Source: Ascidiella aspersa (lineage: Eukaryota). From it: 64,000 nt of DNA. The DNA is taken from assembly GCA_963924565.1 (NCBI GenBank), contig OZ004609.1:13330001-13394000 (forward strand), written 5' to 3'. The position numbers were made by a program, and so were the translations under genes. Positions 49,133 through 52,100 of this stretch are shown one piece after another. Position 1 is the stretch's first letter, and each line of letters opens with the position of its first letter. The notes under the pieces were generated by a model, which saw only the letters and a program-made list of their open reading frames with translations, searched no databases and was not told the DNA's origin.

Positions 49133-52100
49133 TCAAGTGTTAAGCCCACCTTCACAATAAGCGCCATCGGCCATGACAAGTTGCAGTATTCTTGGGTAGA
49201 GATCATCAAATCTGTCGCCCAAAACCGATTTCACCTTTTCCTGGCACACCGCCAACTCTTCGTCTTCGTCTTCATGAATTGCCTGAAAAAGTTGAAAACA
49301 CATACCATAAAAACATTTGCAACGAAAAATTGAATTAAGATGAGTTCGAATTATTAGCAAACGAATTATTACGCAAAATCAAAATAAAATATTAAGTAAC
49401 AAAATATTATGTCCAATAGGTGAAGTTGGCCACTGTGGATTTTTTGTTTGGGGGAGGGGGCATGAAAATTTTTCGAGATGATGTCACAAAGTTGCGTCTT
49501 AGATTAAAGTCATGAAGTCAAACAACGAATATTAAAAAACTGCTGTTCACGGAGCACATTATGCAACTGAAGTTAAGTCTAATGGCTCAAAGCGCAAAAA
49601 ATTGCATTTATTTGGTTTAAATTGGCCAAACTTTTTAATATTAGGGCACATAAAGGAGATTCGCATATTGCTCTATACAATTGCATTTATTAATCTGTCA
49701 AAAATTGCTATTCTAAAGTATATAATTCCATACAGCACAATATAAAAGGCGTAGTGTGCACGGCGGGTTTGGGCTGAAAAGATTTCCTTAAAACAGACAA
49801 AATCGTAGTGAAACTTGAAAAAGTTTTTTTTAGAAACCTTTATATATAAAAGTCGCCAAAAATATAGTTTGAAGGCGATGACCGGTTTCGCCACTAAAAG
49901 CGATCTAGGTCCAAGAACCATGGATTAAATGTTTGGCAAAAACATAATGTAAAAAAAAAAATATCATGGCAAAAAGTAGTTTTAGAAATTACATTCATGT
50001 TGGCAAAACTTGATAATAAACAAATCAAACAAGTTTATTTTTCCCAGTCAGTCCTTCGCGTCTCCTTGCTAACCGTTAACTGGGCGCTTCAATCCCTGGT
50101 TTAGTGAAAGTGTTTCAAAATTTTGGCCATTTCGAGTACTTGTATTTTTATAAATCCTTATAGCCTCTCCCTCTGCAATGGTCTGTGACAGACAGTTAAA
50201 ATGATAACAAATACTTACTTGCACGCATTTATAAGCATTAAGAAATGCATCGAAGCCCAACTCCTTTTCTAACTGCTCTCTATTGCGCTCCAAGCGGCAA
50301 AATATACTTTCTGTGTCGGAATTATCTTTTTTGGGATGATTACAATCGTCATCTTCGAAAGAACTGCTTCCACTTCCTACTACACAACAGTGTTGGTAAT
50401 TATTATTATTCATTAATGTTAAACAAAATAATTGTTGCCGTTTGTCGGAAAAACTATACTTCCAGATTCTTATTTGTTAATAATATAACCATTGCCAGAA
50501 TTAAAAAAAAAACGAATTGCAAAAGTGTTTCCGCTGATTTATCACGGCCAGGTGCCAAAAAACTACCTAAAATATCCCCGAAAAATATGGTGTCTAACGC
50601 GTCACAATGACGTCATCCATGTTCTAATGAGCTGCAAATATCAAAATATAGACACTATAGAAACTCGAAATTGGTCTTATGTTAAAGACTATATATGGGG
50701 AGTAACAAAAAAATCCACTGGATCAATTAGTAAACATTACAGCTAGCTCGTAATATGTTATCAGTCTATGCGATGCTTTCTGAACCGATAATAATGTGTG
50801 TACGACTGTACGTCGATGTGCAGTCACACCGTATAATCCTAAAGAGGTTTAGCTTGTTGATGATGCCTAAATTTCGTTATAACATGAACAAAGATTTAGT
50901 CCAATAGACTTTTTCGGTACACCCAGTATCTTCTATAAAAAAATATATTAATCTCGAGTGTCTATATCAGTGGTTCCCAACCTGAGGTCCACCGAGAGAA
51001 AGCATTTGGGGGTCCGTGATTGGGTTGCGGTTGTTGTATATTTTGTAAGGGGTCATTTTTCAGGGCCTTATTTTCAAGGGGGATTCAATAATTGTGTCAT
51101 TATAAATAGCGTTATTTACAAGGTTAATTTTTGTAATATTATATATTACACTTTGGTTTATTCGTTTTACGGTTTATATTAAGTTGTACTTTCTCTTGAC
51201 TTGTTTCTGCAAGCAAAAAAAGATATGGGCCGAAAAATTTCTTGCCTTCACCTATGACTTTACAGATGCAAAAGAACTTTTGATAGACATATACACATCC
51301 CAAAACTTTTCCTTGACTTGTTTCTGCAAGCATAAACAGATATGGGCCGAAAATGTTCTGCATTCATTTGTGACGTACCCCCTCTCCCTCAAATCACATA
51401 AAAAACAATTTATTTTCCCCCTATTAATAAAAAAAACCTACGATCAATTAAAAACAAAATGTTTGATGACCACGAAACCATAGATAAACGATGAACAAAA
51501 AAAAACATTCTCCACCCGGGAGTAAATATTTCATTAACAAAACAACATTTTTTCAAACCCCATTCAAAAAATGCACCCCCAACCCTTGGGCCAAAACCAC
51601 AAAAATCTACAACGTTCTTGAACATTTTTTTACTGTTTTTATTCAACAACAACAACAATCTGACAGTACAGTAGTTGGGTAGCATAGTTATTTCAAAAGT
51701 CAATAGTATGTTAATTGATGAAAGACACACACAAACATATGTGTTTAATAACATCTGTGATCTAGCCCCTCGGAAGTTGCTTTATGACCAACGATTATGG
51801 CTTCCGTATCAATAGTACACCGAAAAGCCATCGCAGACTCGCCGAATCTGTCGATCTATGATGCAAGCAGAGCAAGCCAGAAAAACAACTGGCCTGCAGT
51901 GAGGTTCGAACTCACGACCTCCGGTCAAGCCGGGACCGTCGCACATTGTGCAAGTATTGGCGCATGGTTGTTTCTCGACTCGCTCCTCTCTGAGCCTGCA
52001 TAGCTCAGTTGGTAGAGCGACGGTCCCGGCTTGACCGGAGGTCGTGAGTTCGAACCTCACTGCAGGCCAGTTGTTTTTCTGGCTTGCTCTGCTTGCATCA

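Follow-up and report, generated by a model that had tools for sequence, protein, structure and literature searches.

We analyzed a 64,000-nucleotide stretch of the Ascidiella aspersa genome (contig OZ004609.1, positions 13,330,001 to 13,394,000 of the forward strand; hereafter, the window), which carries a tRNA-like sequence inside a small retroelement with a repeat unit of 348 nt. The interval 51706-52153 of the window is one young insertion of this element and consists of an inverted arm and a direct arm enclosed by a pair of target-site duplications (TSDs). A first-pass annotation of the window had interpreted 51943-52080 as a mobile cassette containing a whole tRNA-like gene. A minus-strand copy of the element (51719-51942) abuts the direct arm, and the TSDs enclose both; position 51943 is the inner junction (51942/51943) of a two-armed insertion and not the start of the element. 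The features of the locus are listed below. Unit coordinates refer to the 348-bp unit taken as L018:56-403, site A denotes unit 250-255 (GGTGTA(CTATT)), site B denotes unit 348 (CTTTCAT), and T5 and T4 denote runs of five and four T residues.

51706-51718: left TSD GTATGTTAATTGA, read directly; its last base may be the element's instead
51719-51942, minus strand: inverted arm, unit 348 down to 124, with the outer end at site B (...GTGTCTTTCAT)
51803-51812, minus strand: decamer TTGATACGGA in the inverted arm
51881-51885: complement of the T5 in the inverted arm
51891-51942: partial tRNA-like part in the inverted arm
51816-52143: palindrome from a repeat search, arms 51816-51942 and 52017-52143 with 74 nt between them
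51943-52143, plus strand: direct arm, unit 49/50 to 250, with the outer end at site A (GGTGTA)
51943-51993, plus strand: the "leader" of the first-pass annotation, unit 50-100, internal element sequence
51994-52068, plus strand: tRNA-like cloverleaf, unit 101-175, with A-box-like TAGCTCAGTTGG and B-box-like GTTCGAACC
52074-52078, plus strand: T5, unit 181-185
52141-52153: right TSD GTATGTTAATTGA, read directly; its first 3 nt overlap the element's GTA

The complete unit carries the following marks.

Unit 101-175: tRNA-like part (ARAGORN, Rfam)
Unit 181-185: T5
Unit 240-243: T4
Unit 4-13 and 254-263: decamer TTGATACGGA, its only two occurrences in the unit

The TSD at the window locus is 13 nt long and the same on both flanks, a pattern also seen in L001. 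When the inverted arm was compared with the 348-bp unit by blastn, window positions 51718-51942 aligned on the minus strand to unit 124-348 with 99.6% identity. The arms of the palindrome are 127 nt long and 100% complementary; the palindrome is perfect because the two arms of the insertion overlap over unit 124-250. The start of the direct arm (51943-51953) has a counterpart at the junction of L002, so that two independent insertions have an arm with its 5′ end at unit 49-50, and the variant A51C is present in both. This common start may reflect one source RNA with a 5′ end at that position.

The genome-wide family was searched with the direct arm (window 51943-52143) as the query against the genome from which the window was taken (308.6 Mb in 75 contigs). 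The search produced 2142 first-look candidates, of which the best 40 were scored, giving 45 listed matches. Among these, 41 were 100% identical to the query, and the remaining four were either 94-99% identical or covered part of it; at 40 other places in the genome the direct-arm stretch recurs with 99-100% identity, again among the best 40 of the 2142 candidates. Many of the listed matches stand at an exact spacing of 348 bp and thus form tandem arrays, including an array of 9.2 units with 100% identity between units. A second subfamily among the listed matches has an identical tRNA head preceded by a different leader.

Copy numbers were estimated by counting exact words over the genome, with reversed-pattern controls that all gave 0. 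The 26-nt tRNA head has 990 exact copies, 410 of which carry the exact 26-nt leader of the young copies, and the leader block CGACTC lies 10-14 nt upstream in 824 of the 990. A 20-nt word covering the T-arm and acceptor has 1861 exact copies, about twice the head count, as expected because 5′ truncation predicts such an excess. A T5 located 3-9 nt past the T-arm word was found in 1654 pattern rows against the 1861 words, which corresponds to a share of ~87-89% when loci counted more than once are allowed for (the first 100 rows contain 2 surplus ones). The 100 heads listed first represent 80 loci (62 single, 16 pairs and 2 triples), and all seven opposite-strand neighbor pairs among them are arranged head-to-head, with none tail-to-tail. 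The family is a non-coding, abundant and young retroelement with ~1,000-1,900 exact-word copies, although its density is modest: seven fragments were found in the window together with 200 kb beside it, to which the neighboring 200 kb contributes two.

In the Logan data, the 348-nt unit appears as a cyclic unitig of 378 nt (348+30) with at least 99% identity in three of four runs (X2, X3 and X6). These three runs bear three different organism codes, so the element may be common to several of the labelled organisms or samples; among the runs listed as containing the element, none is recorded as RNA. Two pattern scans of metagenomes for relatives yielded 0 and 7 loci; all seven match the tRNA part alone, with 77-84% identity, and were rejected as family members on that ground.

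The architecture of the element was determined from 30 loci taken from the genome search, which represent 15 distinct young insertions, the window's own included. Direct repeats of 8-15 nt, AT-rich in sequence, abut both ends in all 15. Ten of the insertions, among them the window locus, are two-armed, with an inverted, 5′-truncated copy beside a direct arm or array, and five are one-armed. Site A forms one outer end and site B the opposite one in 9 of the 10 two-armed insertions; the tenth (L002) ends at B and at unit 229. The one-armed insertions L003, L007, L025 and L026 start at unit 250-259 and end at B; the fifth, L027, runs from unit 32 to A. Thus, two outer ends are fixed, and the arms are 5′-truncated at varied places. 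Sites A and B are 98 nt apart, and each lies directly 5′ of the decamer TTGATACGGA. Ends at B are sometimes followed by 1-9 extra nucleotides, clearly TCA in L002, L030 and the copy at 8.5 kb of the window, and poly-A is absent from the element ends of the young insertions. Head-to-tail multimers occur within one insertion in L003, L007, L025, L026 and L027 and in all arrays. On contig C1, one 13-nt duplication ATTTATCTTAACA encloses an array of 10 or more units that is bounded by an inverted arm on one side and by site A on the opposite side. The copied template thus spans whole units, often several of them, and covers the 100 nt upstream of the tRNA-like part as well as the 170 nt downstream of it.

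Three further copies of the family are present in the window.

8504-8515 and 8713-8724: TSD TTTATACCAGGG of the 8.5-kb copy
8516-8712, plus strand: one-armed 5′-truncated copy, unit 155-348 plus TCA, B-ended
8542-8546: T5 of the 8.5-kb copy
22053-22061 and 22277-22285: candidate 9-nt TSD CATGCATTT of the old copy
22062-22276, plus strand: old-subfamily copy, approximately unit 40 to 254 plus 7 nt, 67% identity
22117-22191: tRNA-like part of the old copy (ARAGORN and Rfam, 30.4 bits)
22195-22199: T5 of the old copy
53553-53729, minus strand: older 5′-truncated copy, unit 167-348, B-ended, 81% identity, with T4 in place of T5

The old copy at 22.1 kb aligns to unit 37-254, i.e. from ~65 nt upstream of the tRNA-like part, and its 3′ end lies ~7 nt beyond site A. 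An nhmmer search over all of the retrieved sequence found no old-subfamily copy beyond those already known; a first-look count over the genome put the old copies at ~200. Shortly before the TSD of the 8.5-kb copy, at 8469-8497, there is a run of 28 A residues, which could derive from the tail of a different retroposon. A different and very abundant short repeat follows the two-armed insertion directly (52160-52250, ending ...AAAAAGGTTGGGAACCACTG); it has weak copies in the window at 20.9, 27.3, 29.3 and 55.3 kb, and the Logan word depth over 52214-52250 reaches ~127,000 in run X2.

The old copy was informative about the stretch upstream of the tRNA-like part. It had been proposed that ~40 nt of upstream sequence are common to diverged copies and that the mobile unit therefore extends 5′ of the tRNA. 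Both proposals were confirmed. A local alignment of the leader alone (51943-51993) to 22062-22116 scored 31, compared to 13.8 ± 2.6 for shuffled sequences, none of which reached this score in 2000 trials, and the homology is longer than first described. In tandem arrays the leader runs on into the upstream unit. Not one of the 15 young insertions begins at G1 of the tRNA, and the CGACTC block precedes most of the exact heads, as counted above. It had also been suggested that the leader is a collapsed first tRNA monomer. This was rejected: the alignment of the leader with the tRNA-like part scored 14, at the level of the shuffles (14.8 ± 2.6; 1383 of 2000 at least as high), and Rfam, applied to a dimer of the unit at E<=10, returned no second tRNA match.

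A tRNA at 51994-52068 was predicted by ARAGORN as well as by Rfam; it is assigned as Ala-GGC, and its Rfam score of 54 bits exceeds the gathering score of 29. The sequence of its anticodon loop is CCGGCUU, so that position 33 is C and position 37 is U. In canonical tRNAs this loop has seven nucleotides, U at position 33 and a purine at position 37, and by this rule the loop here is non-canonical. A functional tRNA gene is further expected at low copy number, whereas the head of this module occurs in the 990 exact copies reported above.

The positions of the T runs given in the first-pass annotation (52074-52078, 22195-22199 and 8542-8546, with T4 in the 53.7-kb copy) were all reproduced, and the T5 proved to be a feature of the family, present in the share of copies given above and retained in copies down to 67-70% identity. 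It starts 5 nt past the last base of the tRNA-like part in the young unit and 3 nt past it in the old copy, and it is intact in six of the eight diverged arms and copies that were aligned. The tRNA-like part itself is unevenly conserved. L034, which is 89% identical to the unit, has no differences over unit 101-174 while its flanks differ; the 22.1-kb copy is 69% identical within this part, and comparison of 22 stem pairs with that copy gave 14 unchanged, 3 with double compensatory changes, 1 gained and 4 broken. As judged from this one decayed copy, the pattern of stem pairs suggests that the cloverleaf has been kept. The anticodon arm is the free part of the module, because it is 6 nt shorter (GA-CAGGTATTACC-GAGG) in the subfamily represented by the minus-strand arm at L012:1120-1394, which departs from the unit at just two other positions over unit 68-348 (96% identity overall).

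The RNA of the whole unit is predicted to be strongly structured (−133 kcal/mol, z = −5.8). In the minimum free energy fold, unit 169-194 (window 52062-52087) forms a predicted 9-bp hairpin that has the T5 as its loop, uses the 3′ strand of the acceptor stem and would compete with that stem. Two changes that occur together in L034 and in the 53.7-kb copy, C175T and G188A, are compensatory and keep the pairing of the hairpin. The T5 may accordingly owe its retention to a terminator function, to its place in the loop, or to both.

The dimer of the unit was searched for a hammerhead ribozyme on both strands with a regular expression for the catalytic core (CUGANGA followed by GAAA within 6-60 nt). 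No match was obtained on either strand: the plus strand has CUGAUGA without GAAA, and the minus strand has GAAA without CUGANGA. The CUGAUGA at unit 14-20 could not be fitted by eye as part of a hammerhead. The same expression applied to L051, a Penelope-like element (PLE) of the same genome that served as positive control, gave one match per strand, the minus-strand match being the core in its 3′ untranslated region and the plus-strand match occurring by chance. Rfam at E<=10 reported a tRNA as its only match in the unit dimer and no ribozyme family, a weak negative given that the L051 hammerhead likewise escapes Rfam at E<=1; for this reason the regular expression carries the weight for the absence of a hammerhead.

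To what extent the genome could supply a PLE enzyme was assessed from its GIY-YIG domains. The Pfam GIY-YIG profile matches 25 places in the genome. One of them, L051 (G000:C1:15310900-15314400), contains an open reading frame (ORF) with an RVT_1 domain (9e-9) as well as a GIY-YIG domain at its C terminus (2e-7), and the genome therefore encodes PLEs. L051 carries an inverted 140-nt arm of its own (2517-2656), in which the hammerhead core is mutated. The core in its 3′ untranslated region, on the minus strand at ~560-600, consists of CUGAUGA, a 4-bp stem with a GGUU loop, and GAAA. At G000:C2:30628752-30640503, four minus-strand GIY-YIG matches are spaced 3,422 bp apart, with a fifth nearby on the plus strand; the arrangement resembles a tandem array belonging to a further PLE family, which makes it a candidate partner of the 348-nt element.

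We propose, with a probability of about 0.7, that the 348-nt element is a non-coding retroelement copied from a long RNA and inserted by target-primed reverse transcription of the PLE type, with cDNA synthesis starting from sites A and B. The template would be an RNA that spans whole units and runs through the T5, probably made by RNA polymerase II (Pol II) or as a read-through product of partial tandems. A tRNA-type transcript of RNA polymerase III (Pol III) would not serve, because the copies span both the T5 and whole units; the earlier suggestion that mobilization needs an RNA longer than such a transcript is supported, since the transposed RNA would have to pass through the T5. The PLE enzyme would start the cDNA inside the RNA at A or B, just 5′ of each TTGATACGGA, for which the decamer would serve as a marker of start sites. 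Both ends of the cut DNA would be extended, so that each end of the target receives an arm. Internal starts of this kind would give rise to the head-to-tail multimers, the inverted 5′-truncated arm, the 98-nt tail at one outer end and the TSDs of 8-15 nt. The recurrent 5′ starts at unit 250-259 could correspond to an RNA end, or to a block, at site A. The expectation of a short interspersed nuclear element (SINE) with a fixed 5′ end and a partner among the long interspersed nuclear elements (LINEs) was not borne out at the level of architecture, which is PLE-like instead, although no genome-wide search for a partner LINE was made.

Several observations weigh against this proposal. Most pseudo-long terminal repeats (pLTRs) of PLEs, like all retrozymes, carry a hammerhead, and the unit has no match to its core. 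L051, which is one of the 25 GIY-YIG places and the one compared, has no sequence similarity to the 348-nt unit, and tblastn with its ORF over ~360 kb of the genome detected no other PLE. The extra nucleotides at B ends (TCA, TCAT) differ from the tandem junction (TGA), and the 98-nt tail compares with 30-40 bp in the portions of the published PLE description drawn on here. The 15 insertions are the best-scoring, youngest copies rather than a random sample, and we infer the template RNA and its polymerase from DNA alone.

The role of the tRNA-like part is a separate question. Our guess is that the element has retained it as a Pol III unit, requires it as an RNA fold, or both. An additional output, compatible with PLE-type insertion and not exclusive of it, is that every copy yields, next to the long template, a tRNA mimic of ~75-95 nt: the copy would be an active Pol III gene, and the small RNA, ending at the T5, would act in its own right for the element or the host. 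Judged from the sequence, we consider this plausible but less likely than not. It would agree with the intact cloverleaf and its 54-bit score, the A- and B-box-like sequences, the T5 placed 5 nt (young) or 3 nt (old) past the tRNA part and kept in ~87-89% of copies and in 6 of 8 diverged arms or copies, the absence of differences over unit 101-174 in the 89%-identical L034, and the three double compensatory pairs and one gained pair against four broken in the old copy. The T5, however, is also the loop of a hairpin with compensatory changes and may be kept for that; conservation of the module could equally serve the fold of the long RNA; and the free variation of the anticodon arm between subfamilies (L012, old copy) argues against a conserved, trans-acting tRNA mimic. 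A further-reaching and rather unlikely version is that the tRNA-like fold, the T5 hairpin and the decamer together form a module for recognition and start by the PLE reverse transcriptase, and that in addition ~1,000 or more live Pol III copies release a non-decoding tRNA mimic. Under such a scheme the telomerase-related reverse transcriptase would bind a tRNA-shaped handle and start the cDNA at a measured distance, 5′ of each TTGATACGGA. If true, the element would be a ribozyme-free, tRNA-based counterpart of the retrozymes with two RNA outputs.

Other origins of the architecture appear less probable than PLE-type insertion of a long RNA. A retrozyme-type pathway, in which the unit RNA is excised and circularized by an unrecognized ribozyme, or by the host's tRNA-processing enzymes and RtcB, and then copied into tandem units by rolling-circle reverse transcription, is quite unlikely. 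Its appeal lies in the length of 348 nt, within the retrozyme size range as given in the excerpted part of PMC7229834, the 100% identity of units within an array, the predicted structure of the unit RNA (−133 kcal/mol, z = −5.8), the recurrent 5′ starts at unit 250-259, which coincide with site A as a cleavage site would, and the 378-nt cyclic Logan unitigs (348+30) in three runs. Cyclic unitigs are, however, expected from tandem DNA alone; the expression that detects the L051 hammerhead finds no core on either strand of the unit, with the weak Rfam negative at E<=10 (which misses the L051 hammerhead too) pointing the same way; and the common ends do not lie at the borders of the tRNA-like part (unit 100/101 and 175/176), the expected cleavage positions of RNase P and RNase Z. 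An ordinary tRNA-derived SINE moved by a LINE, with the inverted arm produced by twin priming and the arrays by later unequal crossing-over, is improbable. TSDs of 8-15 nt and 5′ truncation are LINE hallmarks as well, and the B end, CTTTCA(TTCA), resembles a short microsatellite-like tail. Against this stand the tRNA part that is not 5′-terminal (leader block in 824 of 990 heads, start at G1 in 0 of 15 insertions), the second fixed outer end at unit 250-255, which also occurs in the one-armed, A-ended L027 and in the old copy, and the multi-unit arrays within a single TSD, together with the two-armed form in 10 of 15 young insertions. Twin priming should moreover vary the inner priming sites, whereas the A/B pairing is found in 9 of 10 two-armed insertions; LINE twin priming was dropped as the explanation of the palindrome because of the second fixed end A, the A/B pairing and the multi-unit insertions. 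That the palindrome at 51816-52143 is an assembly artifact, e.g. a fold-back read, is extremely improbable. A perfect 127-nt inverted repeat is a typical form of such artifacts, and the Logan contigs examined (four runs) leave the unique flanks of the window locus uncovered; but the arm-plus-arm layout recurs at nine other loci with differing junctions and TSDs, seven head-to-head pairs lie on contig C1, and matching TSDs stand on both sides of the window locus.

The window copy is one ordinary member of its family, and its practical yield is modest. The interest lies in the family. The choice of template and start site by PLEs is poorly understood, with internal initiation at two sites reported in PMC11167929, and this family is a small (348 nt) and young natural substrate, whose putative start sites can be read from its genomic ends and whose decamer could be probed as a signal by mutation. 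It indicates that a tRNA-shaped, Pol III-type module can persist inside a retroelement that is not a SINE, which bears on how such elements may escape silencing or recruit host factors. For annotation, it means that tRNA finders and SINE classifiers will mislabel the 348-nt element.

The element was compared with the known classes of short retroelements that carry tRNA-like or tandem sequences. With SINE2/tRNA elements it has in common tRNA-related A and B boxes, TSDs, 5′ truncation and a high copy number. It differs in the position of its tRNA part, which is internal here but forms the 5′ end of SINE2/tRNA elements, in the T5 immediately behind that part, where SINE2/tRNA elements have no Pol III terminator in their body, and in having multimeric and two-armed insertions with two alternative 3′ ends (unit 250-255 and 348), where a SINE2/tRNA element has a single 3′ end in common with a LINE. 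A search of the literature on ascidian SINEs produced nothing relevant. In the schistosome Sm-alpha element the tRNA-related part lies near the 5′ end. The 348-nt unit differs in that its tRNA module is internal and no ribozyme was found in it; the two resemble each other in that Sm-alpha and Sj-alpha, to judge from the excerpted source, are also short non-coding retroposons scored as tRNA genes by tRNA finders. According to the excerpts of PMC2770079, SINEs similar to Sm-alpha account for 2,342 of the 2,368 calls of tRNA-Gln-TTG, and Sm-alpha carries an active hammerhead; the elements are dispersed there, and the title of a 1998 paper cited in it speaks of satellite DNA.

Retrozymes of metazoans are described as small non-coding tandem units, with 348 nt inside their size range, in the part of Cervera & de la Pena (2020) (PMC7229834) used here, where Mytilus and axolotl retrozyme constructs are labelled 353. 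The 348-nt element is similar in its small non-coding tandem units and its RNA that is predicted to be highly structured. The type I hammerhead that defines retrozymes in the same excerpts is absent from the unit by the core expression. Retrozymes are argued to be non-autonomous PLE derivatives in the portion of Li et al. (2026; bioRxiv 10.64898/2026.07.22.740005) considered here.

The closest resemblance is to the PLEs themselves. In the sections of Craig (2021) (PMC8557442) drawn on here, PLE insertions are partial tandems (pLTRs), often with an adjacent inverted 5′-truncated copy, and have a tail of 30-40 bp at one end only; Naiads are without a canonical hammerhead, and non-autonomous Chlamys elements give multicopy head-to-tail insertions. 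Within the scope of these sections, the 348-nt element agrees with PLEs, including the non-autonomous Chlamys-derived MRC1, in its head-to-tail partial tandems, inverted 5′-truncated copy and one-end extension, and with the Naiad and Chlamys clades in being without a hammerhead. It also shares the variable TSD length and the AT-rich targets. The element is set apart by a complete tRNA-like, Pol III-type module within its 348-nt unit; a literature search, mostly at the level of result listings, returned no PLE-type element with such a module. Frangieh (2024) (PMC11167929) found that purified PLE protein cleaves and extends both DNA strands and that reverse transcription starts inside the RNA at two adjacent sites without homology to the target, the sequence between them being the tail. 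The extension of both strands from two fixed cDNA start sites inside the RNA, the latter deduced here from the ends of the insertions, would be the same process. What is new here is a pair of fixed end sites, each accompanied by a copy of the repeated decamer TTGATACGGA, which match this published two-site internal initiation.

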